DNA of 64,000 nt from Lepidodermella squamata. Taxonomy: Eukaryota > Animalia > Gastrotricha. The stretch covers positions 2,418,001-2,482,000 of the forward strand of contig JBLDXI010000004.1 in assembly GCA_047495785.1 (NCBI GenBank). The letters are read 5' to 3'. The translations under genes were made by a program, and so were the position numbers. This document shows positions 5,604-55,680 of this stretch, piece after piece. Positions within the stretch are counted from its first letter, which is position 1; each line of letters opens with the position of its first letter. The notes under the pieces are model-generated. The model saw nothing but the letters and a program-made list of their open reading frames with translations. It made no database searches and was not told where the DNA came from.

Positions 5604-7280
5604 GAGATACGGCGATTCATATTTAGAGTAAGCTAGTAGTTAGGGATAACATTAGGGTTTGGTCTTTGAATAGTTCATTTTATTTAAATGAATTATTACT
5701 CTTGCGGAACTGTCGTTATCTGAACTAACGCTACGGATTAGTTGTAGAACCGAAATTTGACTCTAATTTACTTTTTAATTTGAAATTACATTTATAAATT
5801 GTTAATTAGTAGTAAATATGTCAAAAGATGTTCACTCAAATTTCAGTAAAGCCATATAGCCATCCCCCTTGTAAAAATGGACGATGCTACGGAGCAGGCC
5901 TGTAATGCGCCTGTAAAGCTGGCTGGGCTGGGGCCACCTGTAATCAACGTGAGACAACATTCTTTCCTATCATTGCTTTGAAACAAACTAATAGCCTGTT
6001 GATCAGAGATCTGTGGGTCTGTGACTTGCCCGACTACGGCTTACTGCACCGCACCTAACACTTGACAAATGGAGGACTGGTGCCGGTTGTGAAAAAGGCA
6101 AGTCGAAGTAGCCCCTGCTGCATTGATAGGCGAAGCTACTAGGGCAAATACCACTTTGGAGCAAACAGAATGACGTGAAAAGTGTCGCGTAACATATGCG
6201 TTTTCGAGTAGCCCGCTTCTTTCCGCTAAGCATAAATGTATAACTTATTGCCCTCTTCGTATTCCCTTTACTCAACCATAATATGCCATGTTTCTTAGTT
6301 ATGTGCGATTGTGCGGTGGCCGAGCGATGTGCGGGCAAGCTGTGTGATTGTCCTGACGGCACGCAGAGGCGAGATTGCAACAACCAGAGTGACGACGATC
6401 TCTAGATATGTCCTACAACGGACAGCCTAACTATCCTTAGGATTAGATACACACTTCACTATTCACTATTCATGCTTTGCGGACTTAATTTAGCTTCAGC
6501 TATATGACAATAATTTGGATTCTGCCAGCGGAAATACAACCTTTTTTTTATCAGCTATACTTAACGTTGCAATCTGATAGTGAATAAGTGCAATTACCCG
6601 GTCAGGCCCGTAATATATCCGAATGTTTTTAATTTTTAATGTGAAATCATTCCTCCCAGCGGTTTTTACCTCATCCTTTTTTTCATTTTTTACATTAACA
6701 CTTGTACGCCCGGATGAAGAGAATCATAGTCAAAGGTGGTCGGTCCTATTTTTGTGCTTTTGTGTTCAAATCAACCCTGGAGTCGCCATGGCTGAAGCGC
6801 CGTTCGAAAAAGGAAGCTTCTAGAAGCTAGAATACCAGAACATTTATCACAACAGCGCTGAGAAAACCAGGGAGTAATCGATCCACCCAATATTTCTAAT
6901 AACGGCGTCACCTTGTGTGGCAAGGCAGAAAAACATCAGCATCGACCCGAACCTTGCGGCAAAACCGTTGTTTCGTGCCAGTACCTTGCACCTTGCACAT
7001 CACCTGAATGAAAAAAATGCCTTCAAGTATACATGATTATTCACCCGGCGTTGTTTTATCTTGATATCGAGCGTGCTAAAATAAGCGAAGAGCCTACTGA
7101 ATCCTGAAACTCCTAAAATCCTAATTCGCTTGATATCAGCTGGGAGCTGGATTCAGGCGTGTGAGTGGGGGCAATCAAATCTAATCATTTAAAATAGAAA
7201 ACTCCCATTTTTTATTTATTCACAATTCAACAGTTTTAAGAGGTCTCTTGTAGGCTAAACAAGTTTTGAATGAAAGTTTT

Positions 7281-7343
7281 GTGGTTCGAACCTCGGCCTC
7301 CTGTACATCACTCAGCTATTTTTTCCACTGAGCAACAGAAGAC
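7281..7343 (-). repeat. tRNA-derived (SINE-head-like) remnant
   Basis: The minus strand has an A-box-like TTGCTCAGTGG and a B-box GGTTCGAACC at tRNA-like spacing, but no complete cloverleaf. Confidence 0.4.
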
Positions 7344-7757
7344 AACTGTTTTTTGTTCTCACTATTTGGTTCATATTTTCTTCTTTCATGGGAAACTTTG
7401 AATTTTTTCATTCCGAGAATACTTATTAGCTGTTTTAAGCTTCACTTTATATCGAAAGCGTGTTGGCGTATCTGTTGAGCTTCATTGCTCGGTGACTGAT
7501 TACATACACGCAATCGAATCTCACTATAGTCCAACCCCAGAACAGTTGAGCCTGCTTCAGAGACCCGTTAAAACCTGGCTTACTGCAAATACAAACACAT
7601 TCGAGTTTGTGAACGTTTAAAAATGCAATAGTATTAAGAAATAAGGAAAAAACATTTACACTGCGTTAAATCATTGCTCTTTTTACATCAACTTTTTCAC
7701 TTCTGTTTGTGCGCATCCCTTTAGTTTTGCCAGTCAGCATATTGTAAACATTAGACC

Positions 7758-9917
7758 TCAAAATGAAGCTCCGTTGGAAAGCCAATCAACAAGTTCTCTA
7801 GCTTGGTTTTCCTTGGATTTTCTTGCCAGGGCCAACGCATCTTCTCCACCCCATGTCACTTGATCACGAGTTCCATTGACAGCCGACACCAAATACTGCA
7901 CGAATTCCAATTGGCCGTATTTTGCCGCAATATGAATTGGCATCATGCCGAAATCAGTTTCCCTTGCAAAAGCATTCGCCCCTCTTGACATCAATAACCG
8001 GGCGACATTCGTTTTGCCGAACATCGCAGCTCGATGAAGCATTGTCACATTATCGCCCAGCCTACCAACATTCACTCCAACCCCCTTTTTCAGGAAAAAA
8101 TCAGCAATATCGTCATAACCCGCCGCAGCAGCTTGATGGCAGGGCAGATTTCCTTTCGCTAAGTCCTTTGCATAGATCAAACTTGAATTCAATTGAACGA
8201 AATACTCGACAATTGGCAGAGTGGAAGGTTTGCCGTAGCAAGCTGAATGAATAGCTAGGTCCTGCAAATCCTTAGTGGATCTCGCGAAAATATTCGCTCC
8301 CCTTGCGACTAAGTATTTCACAATTCCAGATTTCGCGAAGCTCGCCGCCCAATGAAGCGGGGTTCGTCCGAATTCCGAATCGCGTTGGTCGATTAGCGAC
8401 GCGTCCTGGTCCAGCATGAAGTCTAGGGCATCGACGTTACCCAGAGCGGAGGCTTGGTGGACGGGTGTTGTTCCATGGCTGTCGAACGTTGAAATCAACT
8501 GACGGCCCATGATCGGCCACAAAAGCTGAAGGGCGTCTTGTTTTCTGTTCAGGACAGCGTAGCCGAAAGGCGAGGTCTTTTCGCTGTTGTTCAAAAGGTT
8601 CGATTGCCAAGTTGTTGGGCTGAGTAGCACGTCCCTCGGAACCATTGCCAATAAGTCTTCTATCGACCTTAAATCCCCAGATTTCGCTGCTAGTATCAAA
8701 TTATCGAGCTGAAGAATATTCAATTAAAAGAAAGGGTTGTCCTGAAACTTCAAGCCAAACTTCTTCTTTGAACGCTCCAACTAAAGGTTCAATAGTTTGC
8801 TGTGCCAAGATTTGGACGTTTGTAGTTTGGGTAGTTGTAGGCTTTGATGTTGTTGTTGCGGGTCTTGTTTGGTTAGACTTTGGTGGAAGAATGACGAACA
8901 ATTTAATCCAATTGAGAATATTGCTGCAGATTCGAGTGTGAACCATGCATGAGGTTGAGTTTAGCGAGGATATTCCTATTTGGATAAAGCGGCTGTTGTA
9001 TTTGTCTTTGCAAACGATAGGGCTTCCTGGATTGCCAATGCACAAGCTGCTGGTGCATAATTGATCGGAAGAAGAATCGATTGATTGACAGGTTTCGAAT
9101 GGCAGAATAGACACGTTGAGCTTCGACAACAGTTTCGAACCATCTGAGAGTATTAAAGAACATTATTCACTCATTCTCGTAGTTCGAATGGAAATGAAAT
9201 TTTCCGAGACCTTGAGATCCTTACTTGATTTGAGCCTAATCGAGGATTCCCAAAGATTCCCGGTAGTTGTGGTTATTTTAATGACAAGTTTCTATTTTTA
9301 TGACCAACTGGCAAATCTCAACTTCGGAACCGTAGACGCGAATTCGATACTGAACGATTTCTCTCAGTGAAACGGTCTATTAGTATTAGCTACAAACTGG
9401 AGAAAGGTTCAGTACCTGTTTCACTCCAGCTGACCATAGAAATATCGGAGCAGTTTTCTATAGCTGCCTTACAAATCGAATTGCCCGGCAAATCGACTGA
9501 ATCGATGAAAGGAGATTCAGCAAGGTTAACAGGCGCAGAAAGCCTAATCAAAGCAGCGTCAAACCGCTTCGTCACTCGGTCGTAATTCGGATGGACGTAG
9601 ATTCGATTGGACTCTCGAAGCTGTTCGCCAGGCTCATTCAGCAACGCAAAATCGTATCGGCCGATCCAAGCTCGAGACGTTGTCGCGTTTCGAAGCTCAC
9701 CAAATATGTTGGGAATGCTTACAACGCAGCTGGCTGAAGTTAACAGCCATTGCGAGGCGATCAGTGAAGCGCCGCAGACAACAGAAGTTGGCTCACTGGG
9801 CAGAATGGGCTTCAATTTAACTGCAAAAGGGTATTCCCCTCTTTGAGCATTGCCAAACCAAAAACTCAAAGATAACAGTAAAAACAAGCTCTTCATTAAT
9901 GACAGATTAATTTGCAT
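7758..9917 (-). CDS. Gene B2: secreted inactive serine-protease homologue + Thr-rich linker + ankyrin repeats
   Basis: Exons 9917-9416, 9143-8761 and 8708-7758. TSASC and GNPGSP replace the catalytic His and Ser motifs. Ankyrin repeats include GRTPLHWAA and GMMPIHIAAKYG. Paralogue of B1. Confidence 0.85.
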
Positions 9918-9996
9918 GAATTGAACACGATTAACACAGCTTTAAGGAAAAAATGACGCAGTTTTACTACAAATTTCGTGATAAACAATTGATGAT

Positions 9997-12301
9997 TCAT
10001 CTTTTGGTAGGGCTGAGAAAGTTCCTTAGAAAAGCGACGACCTGAGTTGTATCCTCGCCTTGATCAGTTCGAATTGCGCAATCCAACGGAGTTTCGCCCC
10101 TGAAATTGATTTCCTCCGCCAATCCAGCAAAATTCTCGGAAAAATATTTGACCACGGGCAAACGGCCGTATTCTGCTGCGACGTGAATTGGCATAGAGCC
10201 ATTTCCGGCTATATTACTCCTTGCTCTAACATTCGCGCCTTTTACGGTCAAAAACATGACCATATCCGAATTTCCCCATCTCGAAGCTGCATGTAGCATG
10301 GTCCGATTGAATTCAGTATTCCGGCTCTCGATATTAAGGCCTAGGGTTAGGAAATAGTTTACCACGGCAATGCTACCCCCAGCAGCAGCTCGAAGCATTG
10401 GGATGTTACCCTTCGAATCCTTAACAACAGCTTGATTGGGCTGTAGAGACATGAAGTATTCAACGACCGCCAAATGGCCTTCCTGCGCTGCGAGGTGGAT
10501 TGCGTAACTTTCCCAGCCATCCAAGTTGGATTTCGCATTCAAATCCGCCCCTTTTTGCAGCAGAAACTTAACGAGGCTCAAATAGCCGTAGCTAGCAGCT
10601 CCATGTAAAGGCGGTCTGCCGTATTTGCCCTCACGTGAATTTACTAAAGACGGCATCTGTTCTAGGAGGAAAGCGACCGACAGCGATGCGTTGTTGTAAA
10701 CTGCCCGATGAATCGCTGTTGATTGGTCGAAGTCTGTGGCGTTTATCAGGGCTGTGCCCATGATTGGCCATAGCAAGTTGAGCACGTCGATTTGGTCACG
10801 GCGAGCTGCGGCTATTAAGGGCGTTTCTTTGTAGGGGTTCGTTATATTTTGCGATTTCCAAAGATCCGGGTCTGATAGGCGCCGAGATGGATATTTAGCG
10901 AGAATCCTTTTCACTTCGTTCAGATCGCCAGAACTCGATGCTTGCAACAAAATTTTGAACTTTTCATAATTTCTCTTAATTTTAACGGTGGAACTAAGCT
11001 TTTTTGACGACTTACGTCAGATAGCATAGGCATTAAATTGTAAATTGTCGTGGTCCTCAATGTTGTAGCCCTTTGAGTTGTAGAGATGGGTGTAGTCCTT
11101 TGAGTTGTAGAGACGGGTAAGCAGGTACCAGGTTGGGTCCAAGTTCCACTTCGAGAGCAAGAGATTGTCGAAGGTCCAGATCGAATGTAACCCGAATAGC
11201 ATTGAAGGAAAGCTATCGACCCAATTGAAGAATTTGAACCAACAATTCGCCCGTTTTGAATTGCTGGCAACGCTCCACAATCTAAAAAAGATTATTTTTT
11301 CAAACATTTTTGAAATTTATTGAATTTGAAAATTCAAATGAATTAAAAACTAGAAAAATTTGATAAAATCCAGATTTCCGACCTTGAGACCTTGAGGTGG
11401 TTTCATTGATAACTTGATAAATCCAGGGCAAAGCTTCGCAAACCCTCGCATAGATGCCAGGAATAGATTCGTAAGCACTGCACTTCGAATCACCATAGCT
11501 AACAATCCCCAACTGGTACAAACTTCCATCGTACTTTTTGCAGACCAACGGCCCACCGGAGTCGCCCATGCAAGTATCCCCATTATCTGGACCCCCGCCA
11601 GCACAGAAAAATGACTTATGAAACGGGATTGATTGAAACACGTCCTGGCACCATTCGCTGTAGGACCTTGTGTCTAGGTAGACCTTTTGCAGAATTTTCG
11701 CCGTCCTATTCGTTCGAATATCAACAACTCCCCAGCCCATTGCAACTGCAGTTTGGCAATTATCAACAACTATTGCCTCTTCGTAGTATTCAGGATTGCA
11801 AACAGAGCTATCTGGCAGAGGCAACTTGTTGATTATCGATTTTTCAGTGAAATTCACCTCATTTCTCAATTCTATCAAGGCAAAGTCGAATCGTTTTGTC
11901 TCGCGTTGGAACCCTGGATGGACGTAAATTTGCTGCGATTCCAGAAACTGTTCGCCCGGCTCGCGGAAAAGCTGGAGGTCGTATCTCCCTAGTCTAGCCT
12001 GAACTCTCGCAGCTAAATTTGTTTCCCCAGTGTATTTGTCGGCGATTTTGACGCAATGAGCAGCAGTTAGGAGAAAATTCGCTGAAATAACCGAGGCTCC
12101 GCATGTTCCTATAGCTTGACCCGTAACGTCTCTGATCGTTAAATGGGCGATGAATGGAAATTCGCCGGGTTCAGCACTCACTCCATTGTGGATGCGTTCC
12201 GTAGCTTGAAGATCACTGCTAAAGGTTAATTGTAGATTGATGAGGTGAACGCATAGGTTGGCTAAGAGTTGGCAAGATCTGACACGGCTTTTCGTGTTCA
12301 T
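9997..12301 (-). CDS. Gene A2: secreted trypsin-like serine protease + sushi/CCP + Thr-rich linker + ankyrin repeats
   Basis: Exons 12301-11383, 11281-11016 and 10959-9997. Motifs R|IHNG, TAAHC, FDFALI and GDSGGP. CCP exon reads DCGALPAIQNG...GTWTQPGTC. Ankyrin exon corresponds to ORF 9997-10950. Confidence 0.85.
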
Positions 12302-22931: not shown

Positions 22932-23290
22932 GGAATTTGGGAAAACAAATTGGATTTTCGGAATCAGCGCGAAAAATTAGGGTAGTCTGCATGTTTGCGC
23001 ACGGTTATCGTGAAAATTGGAGAAGAAATGGGAATGTAAAGAAATTAACTTGTGCGCGCGTGAGAGAGCGCGCGCGCATTTATCACACGCTACACACGGC
23101 TTCCCCGCTCATGCGCGCTTCCCAAATGCGCACGGTGGAGCGCGTGGAAGGCTGTGTGTGCGCACTACAATCCGCGAAATGTTTGACGACCTATTTCTTC
23201 CTGATTTTGCTTGCTAACTGTGCGCAAATTTGCAGACTACCCTATTTTTTTGCGCTGATTCCGAATATCTAATTTGTTTTCCCAAATTCC
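22932..23290. mobile_element. MITE with roughly 75-bp imperfect terminal inverted repeats
   Basis: GGAATTTGGGAAAACAAATT…GGGTAGTCTGCA is mirrored by TGCAGACTACCC…AATTTGTTTTCCCAAATTCC. No clear TSD. Confidence 0.7.
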
Positions 23291-23624
23291 TGATAGTTAC
23301 CAAGTTGTAATGACTATGTAAAATTGTAAATTGGGCAGTATCAGTCTTTAAAAAAACACTAGTTTCATGGTAATAGATGAGTTTTCCCATAAATTATCAA
23401 GAATAAATACCCAAAAATAGTAATTCCAGGCGTTTAAAGCATGAAATATAGTCAGAATTATCAAATTTCGGCTCGCTGCGCTCGACAATTATTTTCTGCT
23501 TTATTGGCTGCGATCTGCGATCTGCGATCTGCGATTGAATATTAAATTTTCTGAGGTTTTTTAATTGATAATATTTACTCGACGCTTCCCATCGCGCCAC
23601 AGCTTTGAGGAAGTTTACTGGAGT

Positions 23625-25136
23625 ATGGCTACACCAGCGAAGAAGCCATTTGGAATGACTGTCGAAGAGCGAGCGAAGAAGCTGCGGGTCGACGATCTTA
23701 CGGTCGATCAAGTTGCTCTCGTCATGCAGCTAATCCAGCAGTTACGCTCGGAGAATGCTGACACCGTTCCGTCGTCTCCCTGCCCGCCGACTGGGCAGTC
23801 CCCTCCTCACCTGTCTTCGTTCGGTGACCTTCAGATGTCTGTTGACAGTCCACCTTCCTCCCCACCCCCGTCGTCAAGTGGGGCGTCGAACCAGCCCTGG
23901 CAGCAAGCGTCGCCCAAGCGTAAAGTGGCGCGCAAGGAAGACCCGCCGCCTCCGCCCCCGACTCGTACATCTGCTCCCCACCCGTCTATTGGACCTCAAG
24001 AGGCGCCTGTCAACTACAAGGTCGTGATAATCGACCGCGTCACTGGCATGACTCGTGGAGAGCTCGAGCCAGAGTTGGTCCGCGTTGCGCCATGGCTGGC
24101 GCCCGTCGCGGTCGATGTCATGAGCAGCGGCGGCCTCCGCGTGAAGTGCGCCACTGCGACGGACGCTGACAAGCTACTCAAGCGTACCGGCTTCCCTAAG
24201 GGTGCGTTTCGCGACTCAGACTTCCGCATTCACTATCCGGGCCGGCCTGACCCGACTGTGACCGAATCAGATCGCATTTTGAAAGACAAACGCTCGGCCA
24301 TATGCTACCGCCTGCCCTCCTGTTACACTGGCGATACTCTGCGCCCCCTTTTCCGGCCCGAGTATATCGAGGAAATCCGCGAGATTCCCCCGCTCCCTGG
24401 TAAGCAGACGTCGCCGATGGTGCTCGTCTTTCGATCGGCTGAGCATTACGAGGATGCCATGGCTAACGGTGTCAAGTTTCTGAATCGTCGCATTAAAGTC
24501 CACAAGTTGAAAAGCAAGGCTCTCCCGCCTACCTGTCTGAAGTGCGCCGCTTACGGCCATGTCGCTGTCGATTGTTCTCCGGACACCACGCCACGATGCA
24601 GCCGCTGTGCTGCGACTGATCACACGATTTCCACCTGTCTCGCTGAGCCTGAAGATCGTCGTTGCCCCCACTGCAGTGGCGGCGGTGAGCCTCATCATTC
24701 TGGTTCGTGGCGGGGCTGCCCTGCGTTCAAGACCGCCCAGGCTGACGAGGTGGCCCGTCGCCGTGCCATCGCCGTCGCCCGTGAAGCGAAAGCCGCCGAA
24801 CGTGAAAAGCGTCGTCAACAAGCGAAGGTCCCCGAGCACCTACGGGGTGGCCCCACGCACTTTCTCTCCACCCGTGACTTTGTCGGCGGACCAACGCCTG
24901 CTCCGTGGTCATCCACTTCTCCGTCGTGGGTGCCTCCTGCTACTCCGCCTGTTAATCCTGCACTCCGCGGTCACTTTCTGTCGCCTGATGGCGCCCGGCT
25001 CTTTAGTCTTATGGAAGAGCGGTTCCAGCGTATGGAAGCCGCTTTCGAGCGCCGACTCGACACTGTCGGACGCTTATTCGACCGGCTCTTCGCCCCCCCG
25101 CTGCCGCCACAAACCAGCTCGACCCGTAATGGCTAA
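23625..25136 (+). CDS. LINE ORF1, gag-like nucleic-acid-binding protein
   Basis: Three Cys/His knuckles: CLKCAAYGHVAVDC, CSRCAATDHTISTC and CPHC…H…C. Pro-rich N-terminus. First ATG at 23625. Confidence 0.85.
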   Translation: MATPAKKPFGMTVEERAKKLRVDDLTVDQVALVMQLIQQLRSENADTVPSSPCPPTGQSPPHLSSFGDLQMSVDSPPSSPPPSSSGASNQPWQQASPKRKVARKEDPPPPPPTRTSAPHPSIGPQEAPVNYKVVIIDRVTGMTRGELEPELVRVAPWLAPVAVDVMSSGGLRVKCATATDADKLLKRTGFPKGAFRDSDFRIHYPGRPDPTVTESDRILKDKRSAICYRLPSCYTGDTLRPLFRPEYIEEIREIPPLPGKQTSPMVLVFRSAEHYEDAMANGVKFLNRRIKVHKLKSKALPPTCLKCAAYGHVAVDCSPDTTPRCSRCAATDHTISTCLAEPEDRRCPHCSGGGEPHHSGSWRGCPAFKTAQADEVARRRAIAVAREAKAAEREKRRQQAKVPEHLRGGPTHFLSTRDFVGGPTPAPWSSTSPSWVPPATPPVNPALRGHFLSPDGARLFSLMEERFQRMEAAFERRLDTVGRLFDRLFAPPLPPQTSSTRNG

Positions 25137-28002
25137 TACGCTGCGTACGCTACTACAATGGAATCCGTGCGGCCTCCCCGGCAAGGAAGCTGAAACTTGT
25201 CAACAGCTAGAGACTTATAAACCCTTTGCTCTTTTCATAAGTGAATCCTTTCTTTTCTCTCTTTTGCGTGTAACCTCTAGGGATTATGCAATTTTTCGTT
25301 GTGATCGGGTACAGGACTCCGAGGATCTGTTGCTCAACGGCGCTCGTGGCGGCGCTGCTCTGTTTGTTCGGGAGGGCGCTCTCGTGGTCGCCGAGCGGCG
25401 GCTGGCTCTGACTGGTCGCAAGCTTAGTGAGTGGCTCGCTTTGGATGCTGTCCCTTTCGCTGGCTCGTCTGTTGTTCGTCTTCTTACCGGCTACTGTCCG
25501 CCGACGTCGTCCTTGGATCTCAGCTTCTTGGAAACCGAGTTCGCTGGGGCCTCCGCCTCCGGCCTCCCCTGTATCTTTAGCGGGGATCTCAATGGCAAGT
25601 CTCCACTGTGGGGTTCACAGTCCCACGATTTATGGAACCCTCACGGCTATTCCGTCCATCATTTCGTCACCCGTCTCGGTCTGACTGTTCTCTCCTCGCC
25701 TCCCACGCACCTGTCGAAAGCTCACAAGACCCTGTCTACGCTCGATATCTGGATTGTCAACGACGCGGCGCTTCGCCTTCTCGATGGTGGCGTGTCTGTT
25801 GGCGACCGACTTAGCAGCGATCACTTCTGCACGTCTGTCAGGGTTCGTCTTCCGTCCGGCTCTGGCCCTGCTCACGTCTACGAACTCGTGGACCCTGCTC
25901 CTCGCTACGACATCTCCAGAGCCGATCGTTTTGGATTCTCTCGTACCCTGATCCGGCTGCTGTCCGAAATCCCGCTGCCTAATGTCGGCGGCCCAGTGAT
26001 TCGGATCGACTCGTATCGGCGCCAGGTTGGTGCGGCAATCGCCGAATCTCGCCGTGTTCACGTCCCTCTGCTCGACCGCACTCAGCTGAGGAAAGTTTCA
26101 ATGACCCGCGACATGCGTAGCCTGCTCGAAAGAAAGAGGATTCTTGAACGTGGGCTCGGCAATCGAGTTGATGCCGGGCTTGTCGATAGGATCAACGCCT
26201 TGGACGCCCAGTTCCGCGCTGCGAAAGCGGCTCAGCAATTGCGGCGGGATATCTCCAACCTGCGATATGTTGAAGCTCTGTCGTTCCAGCACCGCTACCG
26301 AGAGGCTTATGCCCGCCTCCGTCGTCTCGATAAGTTTCGCCCTACCCCTGTTGATCGCCTGACCTACATGAAGCTCGATGATGGCAGTGTCCTGCCGCCT
26401 TCTACTGCCCTTGCTGATACACTGCTTGATCATTTCGTCAAACCGATGTCGCCCTACGTCGACCCCGATGCGGACGCTGCCACTCGCCAGTGGTGGCAAC
26501 AAGTCGAGGACGATGTCGTTGCAGATCCTGCCCTTCGTGCTTCCGATGTGATCCGCTTGCCCGCTCTCGGCGAGTTTTCTGTCAGTCAACGGATGCTCGC
26601 TGATGCTGTTAGCCGTTTAAAGTCCTTCAAGGCCCCTGGCTTGGATGGTATTCAAAACATCTACCTGAAGTGGGGTGGCCCTGTCCTGCAAACCCACCTT
26701 CGTCGGCTGTTCAACATGTCTCTTGGCAGTCGCTACGTGCCTCAAGCGTGGAAAGAAGCGGTTGTTGTGCCTATCCCAAAGGCCGGCAAGCCGCAGAACC
26801 ATGTCTCGTCACAGCGTCCCATCTCCTTGCTGCCGACTGACGCCAAGCTCATGGAGTCGATCGTGGCTCGGTGGATGACCCAGTTTCTCGAAAGTCAACA
26901 CCTTCTCCCTGAGAATCAGTTTGCATTCCGTCCGCACCATTCCGCGCCAGATGTCCCACTTCGCATCGTTCATCGCGTCCACGTCAACCGCTCCCTGCGC
27001 AGGAAGACTGTCGTGGCCGGCTTGGATGTTCAGGCGGCCTACGATTCCGTGTGGCACGCCGGGCTGATCCATAAGCTGGCCCAGCTGCCTCTCCCGCGAA
27101 ATTTGGTCGGCTGGCTGGCCGACTATCTTCGCGACCGTCGTCTGCAAGCTCGCGTGGCGGGCTCGCTGAGTCGTCAAGTCGTCGTCAATTGCGGGGTGCC
27201 GCAGGGTTCCCCGTTGTCGCCGCTTCTCTACATTCTGTACACCGCCGATTTGCTGTCCGCCCCAAGCGTGGATGGCACGTTGCTGCAGGCCTACGCGGAC
27301 GATCTAACTGTCGTCGGCGAGGGTGGCACGTTCCCTGCTGCTCAGCGTCGCCTCCAATTGGAGCTCACTCGTATTTCCGACTGGGCCAAGAAATGGCGCC
27401 AGAAGTTCAATCCCGCGAAGAGCGAAGTTATGCCATTTGGTAACGCGTCCGTTGATGTTAGGCTCAACGGCGCCGTAATTCCGCAAGTCGAGTCGTTACG
27501 AGTTCTTGGTGTTCACTTGGACCCTAAACTGACGTGGAAAGTTCATGTGGACAAGGTCTCTGACCGTTGCCGCAGAAATCTGGGTTTTTTCAAACATCTC
27601 ATGTTCACCCCTGGGCTGTCGCGCCGCTGGCGCCGCACCCTTTACTTGACTCTGGTCCGTTCGTGCTGGTCTTATGGAACCATTTGTCTGGCTACCGCCT
27701 CGAAGCAACAGCTTACTCGTCTCGCAGTCATCCAAAATGATAGCCTGCGTGCAATGCTCCACATTCGTCGGGACGACAGGGTCCGTGTGTCGGAGTTGGA
27801 ATCTCGTTGCCGCATCCCGAGTGTCCCTCGGTTTCTGGAACAGTGCCAGCGCCGTTATGTCGCCAAAGCCGCTCAGTTTGTCCTGCCGCTGCGCGAGGAC
27901 CTCGAGAGCGTCCGCCTGATGGCCCGCCCCCCTCCGCGCTCGCCCTTCGTGCTGTTGAGCAACAGACTTCCTCGTGGTCCTCTGCCCGACTTCATAGGCT
28001 AG
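25129..28002 (+). CDS. LINE ORF2, AP-endonuclease + reverse transcriptase
   Basis: Endonuclease motifs QWN, SE, GDLN, TLD and SDH. RT motifs APGLDG, RPISLL, QFAFR, GVPQGSPLSP and YADD. The ATG overlaps the end of ORF1 by 8 nt. Confidence 0.9.
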   Translation: MANTLRTLLQWNPCGLPGKEAETCQQLETYKPFALFISESFLFSLLRVTSRDYAIFRCDRVQDSEDLLLNGARGGAALFVREGALVVAERRLALTGRKLSEWLALDAVPFAGSSVVRLLTGYCPPTSSLDLSFLETEFAGASASGLPCIFSGDLNGKSPLWGSQSHDLWNPHGYSVHHFVTRLGLTVLSSPPTHLSKAHKTLSTLDIWIVNDAALRLLDGGVSVGDRLSSDHFCTSVRVRLPSGSGPAHVYELVDPAPRYDISRADRFGFSRTLIRLLSEIPLPNVGGPVIRIDSYRRQVGAAIAESRRVHVPLLDRTQLRKVSMTRDMRSLLERKRILERGLGNRVDAGLVDRINALDAQFRAAKAAQQLRRDISNLRYVEALSFQHRYREAYARLRRLDKFRPTPVDRLTYMKLDDGSVLPPSTALADTLLDHFVKPMSPYVDPDADAATRQWWQQVEDDVVADPALRASDVIRLPALGEFSVSQRMLADAVSRLKSFKAPGLDGIQNIYLKWGGPVLQTHLRRLFNMSLGSRYVPQAWKEAVVVPIPKAGKPQNHVSSQRPISLLPTDAKLMESIVARWMTQFLESQHLLPENQFAFRPHHSAPDVPLRIVHRVHVNRSLRRKTVVAGLDVQAAYDSVWHAGLIHKLAQLPLPRNLVGWLADYLRDRRLQARVAGSLSRQVVVNCGVPQGSPLSPLLYILYTADLLSAPSVDGTLLQAYADDLTVVGEGGTFPAAQRRLQLELTRISDWAKKWRQKFNPAKSEVMPFGNASVDVRLNGAVIPQVESLRVLGVHLDPKLTWKVHVDKVSDRCRRNLGFFKHLMFTPGLSRRWRRTLYLTLVRSCWSYGTICLATASKQQLTRLAVIQNDSLRAMLHIRRDDRVRVSELESRCRIPSVPRFLEQCQRRYVAKAAQFVLPLREDLESVRLMARPPPRSPFVLLSNRLPRGPLPDFIG

Positions 28003-31000
28003 GCTGTTATTCTCTTTTCTCCCATCTTCTCTCCTATATCTTCCCTCTTTTTTCTTCACCTCTTATTTCATGTTGTTTTTCTTTCCTCTACAGGCTGCCT
28101 TGCTTTTTTATAAAATTCCTCCGTTAGCTACCGTTGTCTCCGCCTTATTTTCTCCTTTTTACTCTTACCGCAATTCTCTGTAATGTGTGTCTCTCTGCTG
28201 TCGATAACTACCCTGCAACTGATAAAACCCTCGCCATCTCCCTCTCCGTCTCTTACGTGCCCCATCAATATGATGAGCATGGATACATCTTACTAGCACG
28301 CGCCTCTTGTTCCATAGTATTATTAGAGAGTTATTTTGTGTGTTTTGTTATTTGGAAAGAGGACAACAATAAAGATTTTTATGTTTTATGTTTATGGGTG
28401 CTTTTAAGTCCTCAAATGATCAACCCGTGGCTATCGTTGATTTTCTGCGCTCGCTATGTTTATTTTTCAATCTAGTAACGCGGAACATGGAGGTGCGTGG
28501 TGGAAACACGTTAAAATGGGTTGAAATGAGGCAGAGGCGATTTGGGAAGATTTAAGCTCGGTGGTGGGAAGAAAAACACTTTTTGCAGCCCTGTGCAATG
28601 GAGTCAAGCCATCTTCATCAGAGGCATCAACTTCAGTATGAAATTCTTCGCCTAGAAGTTTCATGAATTCAACTCGCCAAATCTCAGCAGTGATGGGATA
28701 ATAAGTTTGAGATGCCGACGTGGCAGTAACATCAGCGTGAAATTCTCCGGCTAGAATTCTCACGATCTCTGAGTGTCCTTCCCGAGCGGCGTAATGCATG
28801 GGGGTCTCGCCTTCTTTATCAGTAGCATGAACTTCAGCATCGCATTCTCCGGCTAAAATCTGAACGATTTCCGCGTGTCCCCGCATAGCAGCGTAATGCA
28901 ATGGAGTACAGCCAAATCTGCTAGAGGCATTTACGTCGGCATGAAAGTCGTCGGCTAGAATTCTGACGATTTCAGCGTGGTTATTTCTAGCAGCGTAATG
29001 CAAGGAAGTCAAGCTATCTTTATCTGATGCTTTAACGTCAGCATGAAATTCCCCGACTAAAATTTTGACGATTTCCGCGTGTCCATTTCGAGCAGCATAA
29101 TGCAATGCCTTTTTCGCGAGTGTCAGCAACGTCGGCAGACGTATCTCCGTCACGGAATTTAATGCGTTTCGCTTCTTTATCATTGGCATTAACATCAGCA
29201 CCGAATTCGCCAGCTAGAATCTTCACGATTGCTGTATGCCCATTCAGAGTAGCGTAATGCAATGGAATACAGCCGGTTCTGCTAGAGGCATCAACGTCAG
29301 CATGAAATTCTCCGACTAAAATTTTGACGATTTCCGCGTGTCCATTTCGAGCTGCATAATGCAATTGAGTCTCGCCTTTTTCGCCAGTTGCAGAAACGTC
29401 AGCATCGAATTCTTCGACTAGAATCTTCAATATGTGCCTCCCGGGCAGCGATTTGCAACGGCGTATCGCCATCTTTCGATTCCGCGTGAGCATTTGCGTT
29501 TAATTCTTTTACAAGTATAATCACCATGTCCTTGTGACCTCTCAGCACGGCGAGATGCAAGGGTGTATAACCCGATGACATTTTAGTGTTCACAGACTGG
29601 CCCGCATCCGAGGCTAGAATTCTCACAACTTCAACGTGACCTTCCATTGCTGCGACGTGTAATAATGTCATGCCTTGCTCATTCACTATGTCGGTGTTAG
29701 CACCCATTTCTGTCGCCAATGATTTTACAATCCTACCGTAGCCGTTCTCCACTGCCGTCCATATTGGCGACTTGCCATTCCCTGCTTTTGTTTCAATAGT
29801 TTCACTTGCTAAGTTTCCGAGACATCTTACAGCTTTAGCCCGGCCACAATCAGCAGCGACATAGATAGGAGTTCTACCCAGCAAGTCCATGTATAGTGGA
29901 TCAGCATTGAACTTCGTCACCAGAAGATCAATGATGTCATCGTGACCCTCTTGAGCAGCAATGAACAACGGGGTAAAGCCTTCTTCACTTTTGAAGTTCA
30001 CGTCCAAGTTCAAGGTTGAGTTCGATAACAGCGATTCGATTTCTTCTGTCTTATGTTGCCTGATAAGTCTAAACATAAGCTAAAAAGAGGTAACTAATTA
30101 TACTTTTGTTTTTGAACGCGCTCACCCTTTTCGCAGCATTTCCATCGATTATCTCAGAAATGTCTTCCCCATCATTGTCTATAGTAGTTTGCTGGGAAAA
30201 TGGATCAATTGTCGAACTGAGCAATGCATGAGGGCGGAGACGCCTTGAACTATCCTTTTCACGGATAATTGCCATAATGACGCTGCGAAATGCGGGCGAA
30301 TATTTGCGTGAAGCGTCAAAAATTTTCGGGGGGTTTCTAAATAATCAATCGGCTTTATTTTTCCTAAAAGTTGGCTGATCGCCGAGACTTACGCTGTGAT
30401 ACCCATTATGGAATCGAACTATACGGAGTGGTCTGGTAAAATCAAGTGTTTGGTTCTAGGCTCAAATACTAACCGGCAGGTAGAAATTAGCCAGCTCGAA
30501 TAAAGTGACACCCACAGCCCACCAATCGCTCTCGTGTGAGTGCTCTTTCCTGTTGAACAATTCCGGCGCCATGTAATGCATGGTTCCAAGCCTGAAGTTG
30601 TACGCCGTTTGCTGGATACTGATTGAAGAGCTGCGAGGCGTGAATAACATTCATGAGTGATTCAAATCACTGATAGCTCTAGTTTTACTTGTCATAAATT
30701 TTCGCCAAGCCAAGATCCCCTAGTTTCACTTGACCGTTGTGCAAAAAGATGTTTTTAGGCTTTATGTCGCGATGGAGTGCTCGATTGTCATGCAGGGTAG
30801 CGACCGCTGAAGCAAGTTGTCGCGACCACTCTAATAGCACACTTTCAGGGATGGGACCTGTTGCATTTTTCATGTAATTATCCAAGTCTCCGCCAGAGCA
30901 GTATTCCATGACAAGGTAATACATTAGAGAACCTGAATTCCCCGTCTCTGTGATAAAAAATTAGGGGACATTTGTAATTATTACCAGTGATACATTTCGA

Positions 31001-51215: not shown

Positions 51216-51996
51216 TGTGTGAATATATAGCTTTAATCGTGTTAAAATTCTGCAAAAGACTTGACCCGTTGACGGATTTCAGCCGCTGCTACTAGTTTTC
51301 AGCGGCCGCGATAGGGCTAAGGTTTGAAATCGTTTGTTTTCGCTTATTCTTCTATTTCTCCGGGAAATTCAGCGGGTGGGGCGCGTTATATTATTGTGAT
51401 TTATTGCGCTTAAAGTTACATCAATCAAATAGTTTACCACTAAAATATTACAAGAAACGTAAAATCTATGCGAGAATGCTGGACTGTTCTTACAGGACGC
51501 GTAGAATCAGAGATCAAAAGGATGCATATAAAAGACAAAGACTGGCCTGGTGTTAAACTTGCTTTGTTACCGCAGTCTCACAAACAGTTACACCCGCCCG
51601 CAACTGCGGTTACCGCAGGGAAATGGATGACAGGACACGGGCATCACCACGGAATATTCCCGCCGCTGCCCTGCGCCGCCGCAAACGAGTGATCAATGTC
51701 TGAATAAGATCTCGGTTATCAGTCCTAAGCGTTGTCTCAGTCATCGGCTGTTCTCAAATCTCCGGCGGATTCAGTGATACCAATGAATTTTTCGTTCGCC
51801 GAAAATGATGCTAAATTCCCACTCTTAACGACTCACGCCGCGCGCCGGATGCTGCCAATGATGTTAAAGTTTACATGACGTTTTGTTATACACTCAACTT
51901 GATCTGAATGGTGCAAATAAACGGCTGTTGGCTGTTCATAGCCTATAGATGTTGATTTTCCATGCTATGGATGCTAAGGATGCATTGCATTGAAAT

Positions 51997-54900
51997 ATCT
52001 GCGATTGAATATTAAATTTTCTGATATTTCTTAACATCATAATTACTGAGGAGTGTTCTCCCAGTTTTACAAGTGAGGAGCGTTCTCCCATTTATTTTCA
52101 TCTGCTGAACGCCGCAAGAGCGACATCAAGCCATTCTCGCTCTGCCCAGCAATGAAGCCGGAGGCAGTGCTCATGATATCGATAGCCAGTGCTGCAATCA
52201 CTTTTGCCTTGATTGATTTGGCAATAACGAGGACATCCTTGTCTATTGACCTGGAACCATGGACAATTTCAAATCTGATTACGCCTCAAGTTGTGAATGA
52301 GTCAAATCGCGTGCCCAACTACACACGACATGTGACCTGTGCGCCGAACAAACTTGTTTACGAAATCAGCCCACACGACGGTCGACCAGCCGGTACCATC
52401 ACACATGAGGTTTTTTCGATTTATTTTTGTTTCTCACCCCGGGACCCAAAAAGACAAATATCACGACAAAGAGCATCAATCATGATATTATTACTGATAG
52501 CCGGAGTTCAGCCAAATCCAGGCCCAACATTTTCGCTTGAACCAAACTTCACATTAGCCAAGATGGTCAGCGAGATTGGGGTTGAAAGAAATTTGATTAA
52601 CGCGGTGCATTTCAACACAAATGGAATCATGACGAAACTTGAAAAATCAAAAATTTTCAAATTCGAGGCTTTGGCTGAATTTGCTGAAGTCTTTAAGCCA
52701 GATTTGATTTTGATTTCCGAAACAAAAATTCCAGCTGATGCCACGCCGAAGATAGTAGAAGACTGTTTTCCTGACTATGAATGTCTTTGGATTGGGCGGG
52801 AGGATTCTGGTGGCGGAGGGGTAGCTATCTTCGTCAACAAAAGGTTGAAAGTGAAAAACCATTGGTCTTTTCGTTCAAAGGTAGAGAATTTACACGCACA
52901 GGTGGAATCTCCGAGCGGCATGGTCTCCACAGTATCAGTGATTTATCGCTCCCCGACGGTTAAGCCTAAAATACATGTAGAAGAGCTTGACAACGTGATG
53001 GTCGAACTCGTAGCTAAGACTAGCGAAATCGAGCATAGAATTCTGGGCGGCGACCTAAATTGGGATCTCTTGAAACCGCAGATTGCAGAGGATCTGGAGC
53101 AAACTTTTGATTCTTTCAAAATGACTCATAGTTTTCCTCCAGCATTCACTCGGGTAGACACTCGCACTAAGAAAGGCACGATGATCGATCACTTCTGGTC
53201 AACTGCTACAGCTCAAGAAATCATCATCTCAGGTACAATAATTGGTTTAAGCGACCATCATGGGATAGTTTTATCGATTAGAGACTTAGGCAAAAAACCG
53301 AAAACAACACCGAAGCCAGATATAATATCATTTCGTAATCTGCGTGAAATTAAGGCTGATCAATTTCAATATGAGCTTCAAAAGGCCCTAGGAGATTCCG
53401 GACTTCAACGAGACGAGGATCAACAAGGATACTGCGACAGGATCCAAGGTGCTTTCATTACTGTGCTCAACAAACTAGCTCCATTAAGAACAAAAAAGAT
53501 CTCGAAAAATAAGCGAAAAAAGTTGCACTCAACATTTATTTCCCAAGAAAAGCAACGGTCAGACCGCAGGAAAGTCAGGAAATCTCGTCGCGCCAAGTGG
53601 AGGCAAAAGGTGAAATTAGCTGGAAAAGACCCACGAAAATTATGGAAGATTGTAAATGAATTTCGGCCCAAAAAGAAAACGGGGGAAAATGATTTTTCTG
53701 GACTTGAAAAAAATCAGGCTATTACCTTAGCCAATGCCTTCAACAGTCTTTTCGCCAATGTTGGAAAAAACATTGCCATTGCAATGCTACAACGCCTAAA
53801 TTTTCACCGTGCATTCCAGACCACGGAAAAGTTCAATTTTCGCGCAATCACGACAAGGGAACTGCTAGATGCATTGGCTAAGGTAAAGAATAAACCCACA
53901 ACTGGTATAGATGAAATACCCGAGTCAGTTTTGAAAATGAGTGCCAGCGTTGTTGCTCCGCATTTACTTGCTTTATTCAATGAAATAATTCGATCGAAAA
54001 CAATTCCCGAGCAATGGAAAACGGCAATTGTGCATCCTTTGCACAAAGGAGGATCTAAAGATGACGTGTCGAATTTCAGGCCAATTTCAATTCTATCGCC
54101 AATATCTAGGACGTTTGAGAGGTGCATCTCGTTCCAAATTAAATCGCATTTAAATAAGCCGGAAACAAGGTTCTTGTCGCCTACTCAGTTTGGGTTCCGC
54201 AAATTCCATTCAACAGACAGCTGCCTTGCAAAACTCACCGAAGACTGGCACATTTCGCACGAAAAAAGGGAAACAGTCGCAGCAGTAGCTATTGACTTGA
54301 GCAAGGCCTTTGACTCGCTACATCATGAAGGCATCTATAGGTCCTTGGCTAGTGCAGGTTTTGAACTGGAAGCTATTCAGTTGATCGAAAACTATCTCAG
54401 TGATCGTTACCAGTATGTAGAAATTAACCAAAGTCGCTCAAGTAAAGCTAAGGTGGAATTCGGCGTACCACAGGGCAGTGTCCTAGGGCCATTGCTATTT
54501 ACCATCTACGTAAATGAAATGGCTTCGATTCCAATATATTCGAAAATAGCTCAATTCGCAGATGACACCACTATTTACTTGTCAGATAAAAACGTTGAAC
54601 GCCTTCAGGATCGCCTTCAATCCGACATCAACCGGTTGAGTGACTGGTTAGCAGCAAATAGCTTACTAGTCAATGGAAAAAAGTCGCAGATGATAATCAT
54701 AGCCACTGATCCCGATGCACCTCCCCCAGAAATCTCCATCAAAATCGAAAATACGAGAGTCGAAATCACCACATCGCTCAAAGTCCTGGGCTATATTATT
54801 GACAACAAACTATTGCACACTGAACAGCTCAAACATGTGGGTAACAAAACCAGGGGTGGTCTCTTTGCTCTAAAATTTGCGGCTAAATTCCTTGATCGAA

Positions 54901-55680
54901 AAACTCTCAAATTGATGGCTAATGGTGTCATCTTCTGTCACCTAATGTACTGTGACAGCGTCCTAGCCCAAGCGGCAAAAACTAACTTAGAGCGCCTTCA
55001 ACGACGACAGGACAAAGCCATTCGCATAATTTGTCATGCGAATGAAAACGATGACATCGAATCTCTGAGGAAAAAGCTAAAATGGCTAGACCTTGATGGT
55101 AAAAGGAAAGTTCATCTGGCAACCATGATATGGCGCTGCATCAATGGCGAAGCACCGGCTGCCTTAGCCGAGTTCTTCAAACTGCAAGAGAAAACCGCTG
55201 GGGTCACAAGGAGGCAAGTCAACATAAATGCATCGAACAACCTGCTGGTTGTCCCTCGCGCGAAGACCGATACTTCGATGCGATGCCTTCGATACCGTGG
55301 CGCCACGTTCTGGAATGGCTTGCCGAACGAAATTCGCTTAGCTACCAGCGCGGATCAATGCCGGAACCTAACTTATCATTATTTACTGTCTGAACCTACT
55401 GCAAACACTGAGGAAGGTTGTGACGTCATCGAGGCAAGCGGTGAAATTGTAAATACCGTTACTGATGATTAATTTCTAATTCCTTGTTGAGTCTAAATAC
55501 GATATTTTTATACTGGTATGCATGTCATTGTCTTTTTCCTAATTTCCTAACTTTCTTTGTTGATATCTACATAATGACCTCTTCACGTCGAATCTAATTG
55601 TACTAATCATGCTTCTTTTTCAGCTGAGCTGTCCTACATCCCTTGGATATTAATGCTCATAAATAAATAAATAAATAAAT
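51997..55680 (+). mobile_element. Apparently full-length single-ORF non-LTR retrotransposon (L2/CR1 group)
   Basis: Intact APE-RT ORF, short 3' UTR, and a (TAAA)5 tail at about 55660-55680. Confidence 0.9.
52152..55472 (+). CDS. LINE polyprotein: hydrophobic leader, 2A-like NPGP, AP-endonuclease, reverse transcriptase
   Basis: 1106 aa. Motifs LLLIAGVQPNPGP; ISET, GDLN, IDH, SDH; RPISIL, QFGFR, DLSKAFD, GVPQGSVLGP and FADD. Confidence 0.9.
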   Translation: MKPEAVLMISIASAAITFALIDLAITRTSLSIDLEPWTISNLITPQVVNESNRVPNYTRHVTCAPNKLVYEISPHDGRPAGTITHEVFSIYFCFSPRDPKRQISRQRASIMILLLIAGVQPNPGPTFSLEPNFTLAKMVSEIGVERNLINAVHFNTNGIMTKLEKSKIFKFEALAEFAEVFKPDLILISETKIPADATPKIVEDCFPDYECLWIGREDSGGGGVAIFVNKRLKVKNHWSFRSKVENLHAQVESPSGMVSTVSVIYRSPTVKPKIHVEELDNVMVELVAKTSEIEHRILGGDLNWDLLKPQIAEDLEQTFDSFKMTHSFPPAFTRVDTRTKKGTMIDHFWSTATAQEIIISGTIIGLSDHHGIVLSIRDLGKKPKTTPKPDIISFRNLREIKADQFQYELQKALGDSGLQRDEDQQGYCDRIQGAFITVLNKLAPLRTKKISKNKRKKLHSTFISQEKQRSDRRKVRKSRRAKWRQKVKLAGKDPRKLWKIVNEFRPKKKTGENDFSGLEKNQAITLANAFNSLFANVGKNIAIAMLQRLNFHRAFQTTEKFNFRAITTRELLDALAKVKNKPTTGIDEIPESVLKMSASVVAPHLLALFNEIIRSKTIPEQWKTAIVHPLHKGGSKDDVSNFRPISILSPISRTFERCISFQIKSHLNKPETRFLSPTQFGFRKFHSTDSCLAKLTEDWHISHEKRETVAAVAIDLSKAFDSLHHEGIYRSLASAGFELEAIQLIENYLSDRYQYVEINQSRSSKAKVEFGVPQGSVLGPLLFTIYVNEMASIPIYSKIAQFADDTTIYLSDKNVERLQDRLQSDINRLSDWLAANSLLVNGKKSQMIIIATDPDAPPPEISIKIENTRVEITTSLKVLGYIIDNKLLHTEQLKHVGNKTRGGLFALKFAAKFLDRKTLKLMANGVIFCHLMYCDSVLAQAAKTNLERLQRRQDKAIRIICHANENDDIESLRKKLKWLDLDGKRKVHLATMIWRCINGEAPAALAEFFKLQEKTAGVTRRQVNINASNNLLVVPRAKTDTSMRCLRYRGATFWNGLPNEIRLATSADQCRNLTYHYLLSEPTANTEEGCDVIEASGEIVNTVTDD

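Follow-up and report, generated by a model that had tools for sequence, protein, structure and literature searches.

Two LINEs of the gastrotrich Lepidodermella squamata probably carry a captured spliced leader at their 5' ends, as do copies of many other LINE families

Retrocopied genes of dinoflagellates carry relics of the DinoSL leader at their 5' end (Slamovits and Keeling, 2008, as cited in PMC12014239 and PMC5585692), and re-expression and re-splicing of the tagged copies are deduced from the relics. In parasitic flatworms, 597 LINE- or LTR-associated loci that contain partial leaders were excluded in a 2025 survey of spliced-leader (SL) genes, which suggests that they arose when trans-spliced retrotransposon RNA was copied into the genome (PMC12582326). 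In Hydra, about 30% of the Iso-Seq long reads from transposable elements carry an SL (PMC12220107). For gastrotrichs, our literature search found no paper on trans-splicing, and the paper that describes the Lepidodermella squamata assembly (PMC11660948) makes no mention of it.

The window analyzed here is a 64,000-nucleotide stretch of the L. squamata genome. A 28-nt sequence occurs in it twice with 0 mismatches, at 23527-23554 and at 51997-52024, both on the plus strand and each just 5' of a long LINE reading frame. No third site was found within the window, even when 3 mismatches were allowed, and 100 shuffles gave 0 matches. An earlier note on this DNA, made from the letters alone, had reported that the same 28-mer heads both LINEs; this is borne out, with exactly two copies in the window and none expected by chance.

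In order to find the origin of the block, we searched the whole genome (121 Mb in 151 contigs) for the 28-mer at up to 2 mismatches, and obtained 532 matches, many of them spaced at intervals of 8454-8459 bp. One such unit contained 18S, 5.8S and 28S genes on one strand and a 5S gene on the other, and the 8.46-kb repeat is therefore the rDNA unit. At locus L031, the 18S gene is located at 6754-8570. Within it, the 28-mer forms the core of a 33-nt exon that consists of AAAT, the 28-mer and a final G (locus L031, 1187-1219, with the 28-mer at 1191-1218). The exon is directly followed by GTTAGT, a good splice donor (exon and donor together, L031 1187-1225). This leader, termed leader A, has one gene per 8.46-kb unit, about 0.7 kb upstream of the 5S gene and on the 5S strand. 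A second gene of similar build, that of leader B, lies between the leader A gene and the 5S gene, about 470 nt past leader A; it has a different 5' block, which ends in CTAAG and is followed by GTATGA. A sequence of about 30 nt, GTCGCCAATGACCAYGTGCATGTGGT, is found directly upstream of the 5S gene and between the two leader genes (L031 1333-1372 and 1855-1890), and may be a small-RNA promoter element.

Variant leader A genes (L012, L029 and L030) retain the exon, followed by GTTACT and a diverged intron. One of them, L012 (G000:C4:2636150-2639177), is located outside the rDNA arrays, lacks the usual upstream sequence and has a diverged intron beginning GTTACTGTCG; this variant represents a dispersed SL gene or else was retrocopied from unspliced SL RNA. 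Sm-like sites were judged against the consensus RAU3-6GR between stem-loops in the intron part. That of leader A, before a predicted terminal hairpin, is poor and varies among units (CUAUUAG, UAUUUUAG or CUGUUAG), and that of leader B, also before a hairpin, is acceptable (AAUUUGAG). The predicted RNA folds of leaders A and B were no better than those of shuffled sequences (z-scores 0.7 and 0.1).

As far as can be read from the DNA, the source of the 28-mer is a multi-copy SL RNA gene with a GT donor, linked to the rDNA and to 5S. The genome search that the earlier note had proposed as a check thus did locate the 28-mer in an SL-RNA gene, as an exon followed by a GT donor. Its suggestion that the sequence is a new leader is plausible. 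An exact search of public metagenome contigs with 25 nt of the leader returned nothing.

Comparison with the 33-nt exon indicates that the block common to the two window elements is longer than 28 nt. Element 1 contains leader nucleotides 5-33, that is the 28-mer and the final G, at 23527-23555 (plus strand), the same sequence as in the exon at L031 1191-1219, where GTTAGT follows. Element 2 contains the full 33 nt at 51993-52025 (plus strand), with AAAT at 51993-51996, a T instead of G as the last base (52025), and a G at 51992 directly 5' of the relic.

Element 1 is a GC-rich LINE (57-61% GC) with AP-endonuclease (APE) and reverse transcriptase (RT) domains that extends from 23508 to about 28396 on the plus strand. 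Its 5' UTR (23556-23624) opens with an in-register motif (GTTTTTTAA...). ORF1 (23625-25136, 503 aa) is gag-like, with two CX2CX4HX4C (CCHC) knuckles; it has no Pfam match at default thresholds, and shares 54% identity over 112 aa with the ORF of L007, which belongs to another leader-capped family. ORF2 (24559-28002, 1147 aa) encodes the AP-endonuclease (Exo_endo_phos_2, 3e-10) and the reverse transcriptase (RVT_1, 1.5e-34). The 3' UTR with a short TTTATG-like tail (28003-28396) ends where other copies of the family end: judging from the matches to these copies, family 3' ends are scattered over 28350-28408 and lie mainly at 28393-28396. Locus L041 was uninformative for the 3' end.

Between the first base of the insert and the relic lies a filler with extra tandem copies of CTGCGAT (23508-23526, plus strand), recognized by reading the sequence and delimited on the left by the empty-site coordinates given below. 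CTGCGAT corresponds to leader nucleotides 7-13, and four copies span 23508-23535, the last being the leader's own and the other three extra. Duplications or inversions built from the first bases of the leader, akin to this filler, are also present at L062, L069 and L073, of which L073 is the only possible tandem relic seen. Such leader-derived disorder is typical of the place where a LINE reverse transcriptase leaves the end of its template, which suggests that the leader start marks the end of the RNA.

The insertion site of element 1 can be defined from its flanks, because both belong to another repeat family. The upstream flank (23208-23507) is 92-95% identical to C11:1295453-1295752 and C4:1428642-1428941, and the downstream flank (28384-28593) resumes the repeat interrupted at 23507, with 91-95% identity to C11:1295257-1295468, C4:1428441-1428657 and C7:4238246-4238450. 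In the paralogous empty sites on C11 and C4 the two flanks adjoin and overlap by 16 bp, and the insert therefore begins at 23508, ahead of the leader. Examination of empty sites, which had likewise been proposed, thus places the relic within the element 1 insert. The last 16 nt of the upstream flank (23492-23507) resemble the 3' tail of element 1 together with the start of the downstream flank, and 13 positions agree between the two 16-mers. This overlap could represent a target-site duplication, or could be due in part to microhomology of the tail with the target. The interrupted repeat itself (23208-23507 and 28384-28593) has dozens of partial matches in the genome, many of them as inverted pairs about 300 bp apart, which suggests a small element with terminal inverted repeats.

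A genome search with the first 600 nt of the element 1 body identified six copies at 98-100% identity, and older fragments. Leader A stands at the start of all eight family copies (the six near-identical ones and two older ones), so that the 28-mer is not missing from other copies of this family, an outcome that the earlier note had named as evidence against its reading. Upstream flanks differ among the copies and the 5' ends vary by a few nucleotides: relics start at leader nucleotide 2, 5, 8 or 9, and in one older copy at nucleotide 21. In the young family each full-length copy has a relic of 25-32 nt, and the assembly contains no relic-less master. The recently active sources probably carry the relic themselves, because no relic-less copy with an upstream acceptor was found.

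Element 2 has an ordinary base composition (41-43% GC) and a single ORF with APE and RT domains, and extends from 51993 to about 55679 on the plus strand. The 5' UTR (52026-52151) opens with the common motif ATTTCTTAAC and holds repeated GGAG..CTCC hairpin-like units (compare L059, L066 and L074). The ORF (52152-55472, 1106 aa) encodes an AP-endonuclease (Exo_endo_phos, 2.2e-07) and a reverse transcriptase (RVT_1, 3.2e-32), and matches the ORF of leader-capped L066 at 52% identity over about 450 aa. The 3' UTR (55473-55679) ends in an (ATAA)n tail at about 55659-55679. The 9-mer GATGCTAAG, considered as a possible target-site duplication, occurs 14 nt beyond each end of the element, which is near chance level in this repetitive flank.

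No close copy of element 2 was found in the genome. Its relatives, at about 70% nucleotide identity, open with the full leader at the same position, and the only difference between their leader and that of element 2 is the T for G at the last base. In the relatives L048-L050 this last base is an unmutated G, followed by ATTTCTTAA. The two window elements had been called unrelated, which is an overstatement: their RT regions are 28% identical (E 6e-46), as in distant relatives, and no nucleotide similarity would be expected at such a distance.

In order to see how far the leader has spread, we analyzed sites at which no SL intron follows leader A. Of the 532 matches, about 460 are estimated to be the genes themselves, and 60-70 to be dispersed copies; the latter estimate is based on two pattern classes, with 37 and 36 matches, part of which are chance or rDNA matches. 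Thirty-six distinct dispersed sites were examined. They had been collected by patterns that require the leader 3' end, which biases the junction statistics.

In all 36 copies the relic is at most 33 nt long (33 nt in 11 copies, 31-32 nt in nine, shorter in the rest), and in all 36 the sequence upstream of the SL gene is absent 5' of the relic. The relic ends exactly at the GAG exon end in 35 of the 36, as loci picked by the leader 3' end; the exception, L018 (minus strand), has the leader and GTTA, the first four intron bases, before the body. Directly 5' of six of the 11 full relics a G is found, where the gene has T (binomial p about 0.015), and this fits a reverse-transcribed cap.

By the sequence that follows the relic, the 36 copies fall into 23 groups that share no nucleotide similarity. 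Of the 23 families, at least 14 are LINE-like, having a CCHC ORF1, AP endonuclease or RT, or clear LINE relatives; no host-gene retrocopy with a leader was recognized among the 36 copies. Upstream flanks of all relic copies differ, and no family yielded a copy that lacks the leader and has an outron and acceptor upstream instead. The earlier note would have been contradicted by a 28-mer dispersed independently of LINE 5' ends; outside the SL genes, we found it at 5' ends, mostly of LINEs. Near the end of a contig, L019 and L020 (G000:C8:1-2265 and 9036-12063), both leader-capped and of one LINE family, are inverted relative to each other, with an (ATTT)n run ahead of each; the pair is possibly a palindromic artefact, if the assembly was made from amplified DNA.

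Similarity between the window elements had been noticed to continue loosely beyond the leader. This similarity is real, and consists of an in-register RTTTYTTAA motif that begins the body at 23556-23564 and 52026-52034, as well as in L003, L008, L019, L049 and L056. The motif is common to several LINE lineages, and other families begin with (ATA)GGGRGACG. The 5' modules are mosaic, since the related L056 and L077 (72% identity at the start of ORF1) differ in their 5' start. The AT-rich stretch after the leader was also considered as an older leader relic. This was not convincing, as 19 of 500 shuffles reached the score sum observed for the 23 families; for the window elements taken singly, alignment of the stretch to the leader gave p=0.42 and p=0.31.

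Rfam searches of the window and of the 5' ends of 12 leader-capped loci found neither a ribozyme nor any other family. Three diverged families (L001, L017 and L018, the last on the minus strand) have a conserved GC-rich hairpin, GYGGGAGAC ... GUCCCCGC, directly after the leader, within the first 30 nt and with a predicted energy of -13 to -16 kcal/mol, again with no Rfam match. A long, perfect-looking palindromic hairpin within the LINE locus L077 (1177-1287) gave a sub-threshold Rfam match to MIR169_2 on both strands, probably a chance match to the palindrome.

The exon of leader B was found at 28 dispersed sites at which it is followed by a base other than the first of its intron. In three LINE families, some copies have leader A and another has leader B, joined to the same nucleotide of the body. 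The family with body start ATTTTTTATGAAAAAT has leader A three times and leader B at C4:1680445, the family with body start ATTTGTTAAACATATT has leader A six times and leader B at C42:1390072, and the family with body start ATAGGRGACGGCAGGC has leader A at C24:3015657 and leader B at C21:1803434. These three families are other than those of the window, and the element 1 family has leader A in 8 of 8 copies. Starts like that of element 2 (ATTTCTTAAT...) occur behind leader B too, a short-motif resemblance that is suggestive only.

One acceptor with two alternative leaders fits repeated trans-splicing. Neither a single ancient capture nor read-through of one SL gene would let one leader replace the other, and the replacement also argues against a promoter cassette and a shared target site. 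In addition, in the family of L021, L023 and L078 (99.7% identical) the junction of L021 is moved by exactly ATAG, these four bases being absent behind the leader, and this is the shift to be expected if the next AG served as acceptor.

Together, these observations make it quite probable that the common 5' block is spliced leader A of the animal, captured by way of trans-spliced LINE RNAs that were reverse-transcribed. The earlier note had preferred a trans-spliced leader copied into DNA with retrotransposon RNA, and this preference is supported by the exon with its donor, by the limits of the relics, by the breadth of their distribution, by the position of the relic within the insert and by the leader swap. 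The spliceosome would join the leader exon to an acceptor near the front of the LINE RNA, transcripts of many LINE families would be trans-spliced in this way, and in target-primed reverse transcription the enzyme of the LINE itself would copy the leader-capped RNA right up to the end. New full-length copies would thus open with the leader in DNA. That splicing, and not some other joining process, made the junction between leader and body is what we infer from the genomic sequence. By extension from the swap families, the two window families would also have received their leader by trans-splicing, and the same leaders presumably serve host mRNAs.

Captured leader A competes with several other explanations, of which read-through is the least improbable, though still unlikely. 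A LINE with site specificity for the SL gene donor would here be transcribed from the start of the gene, its RNA would contain the exon unspliced, and the dispersed copies would be off-target insertions. LINEs do reside in rDNA leader A genes, at or just after the donor: L080 (G000:C47:67212-70226) exactly after the GAG exon end, L015 (C5:27330-30357) at +8 with a duplicated GTTAGTAGAG, L026 (C17:3894566-3897593) at +16, and L027 (C17:3904553-3907580), in which an additional GTTTTTAGAG separates the exon from GTTAGT. Two of these residents are distant relatives of element 1 (RT 32% identical to L026, ORF1 22% to L080), whose lineage may therefore have arisen by read-through, and the GTTA that follows the leader in L018 (minus strand) would also agree with read-through. 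However, the sequence upstream of the SL gene accompanies none of the 36 dispersed copies, and the window elements have neither this sequence nor the SL intron downstream. A whole-genome search with the element 1 5' region found no copy of this family in an rDNA array, and the four sampled residents belong to other families. The junctions also differ, being at +0 in 35 of 36 dispersed copies, whereas residents sit at +0, +8 and +16. Finally, a family fed by one SL gene should have no clean junction with another leader, but three families have one.

Template switching, in which the LINE reverse transcriptase jumps at the RNA 5' end to an SL RNA or a free leader exon, as in mammalian U6-L1 chimeras, is very improbable, and a promoter module about equally so. 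The stutters and inversions built from leader sequence (23508-23535, L062 and L073) do show odd enzyme behaviour at template ends, but switching should bring along intron sequence or varied ends, while in 35 of 36 cases the junction coincides exactly with the exon end; the body side, too, is fixed within families and begins with G or A after AG, like an exon. A free leader exon, moreover, exists only transiently, within the spliceosome. As a promoter module, the block would be a cassette exchanged among LINEs, similar to Pr77, and its resemblance to the rDNA spacer would be secondary. It does stand at the 5' end of many LINE families, whose relic-bearing copies seem recently active, and the in-register RTTTYTTAA downstream of it is common across lineages; a promoting effect on transcription has been proposed for a T-run within the leader relic of dinoflagellates (PMC12014239). 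Against this, an estimated 460 or so of the 532 matches are rDNA-borne genes with a donor after the block, the limits of the block are those of the exon, and the unrelated leader B substitutes at the same junction, which is not expected of a promoter cassette. A shared or swapped promoter module, the alternative offered by the earlier note, is thus not supported as the origin of the block, given its exon identity and the leader B substitution; a later promoter role of the relic may still exist. A common target site, with both LINEs inserted beside the same pre-existing sequence, is favoured by nothing except the shared block itself and can practically be dismissed. The note had already held it to be less likely; for element 1 it is refuted by the empty-site coordinates, which place the block within the insert, the upstream flanks of all copies differ, and the SL intron follows neither element.

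If leader capture by trans-splicing is accepted, the relic could also be a working part of the LINE, namely a self-renewing 5' end, which we consider possible but rather doubtful. A read-through transcript of a relic-bearing copy would be trans-spliced at the terminal AG of the relic or at the next AG; the flank would be trimmed, and a fresh capped leader A or B would restore the exact full-length 5' end. Such a LINE could do without a 5' ribozyme and without a precise internal promoter. In favour of a self-renewing end are the replacement of A by B at one nucleotide in three families, the ATAG shift of L021, and the element 1 relics without a relic-less master. Against it, GAG and AAG make poor acceptors if judged by the usual YAG rule, and a relic-less master may be unassembled.

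Leader capture would account for the puzzling 5' block that the two elements share, and no new kind of element would have to be invoked. It would also provide DNA-level evidence for spliced-leader trans-splicing in Gastrotricha, a group for which we found no report of it, and would mean that many LINE families of different lineages go through a trans-spliced RNA stage. In practice, leader relics would flag full-length insertions together with the true RNA 5' end, and could serve as a handy tag for LINE annotation in this genome. From the exchange of leaders A and B at one nucleotide comes the idea, open to test, that LINE 5' ends are defined and repaired by trans-splicing.

LINEs joined to a leader at the 5' side, as here, are also known from C. 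elegans (NeSL-1) and from trypanosomatids (SLACS, CZAR and CRE) (PMC3636483, PMC4640811). These elements are located inside SL genes and have a restriction-like endonuclease, whereas the window elements are dispersed and carry the leader within the mobile unit. The endonucleases of both window elements are of the AP type (Exo_endo_phos and Exo_endo_phos_2), and so not restriction-like, and no SL gene sequence was found at the flanks of the window elements or of the 36 dispersed copies. Pr77 of trypanosomatids (PMC1874656, PMC8190864) resembles the present block in being a short 5' sequence common to many retroposon families. However, Pr77 is an internal promoter and ribozyme, its transcripts are unspliced and it is not an SL exon, whereas the block described here is an SL exon. 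Furthermore, this block is not confined to retroposon 5' ends, which is the hallmark of a Pr77-type sequence, as most of its copies are exons of rDNA-borne SL genes.

The Hydra data (PMC12220107) show at the RNA level that transposable element transcripts use the host's SL trans-splicing, whereas the present data consist of relics at the DNA level only. New in L. squamata are the leaders themselves and the documentation of junctions, insert limits, many families and the leader swap, in a phylum that probably has no previous record of trans-splicing. In comparison, the flatworm loci were the subject of a side remark and carry partial relics (PMC12582326), whereas here relics of full exon length are found and families, junctions, insert limits and swap are documented. 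With the dinoflagellates (PMC12014239, PMC5585692), the likeness is that the leader is reverse-transcribed with the RNA and becomes encoded at the 5' end of the DNA copy. In dinoflagellates host genes are tagged and re-splicing leaves tandem truncated relics, whereas in L. squamata LINEs are tagged, with a single clean exon. Unlike the dinoflagellate relics, the relic in L. squamata can have its place taken by another leader at the same nucleotide.
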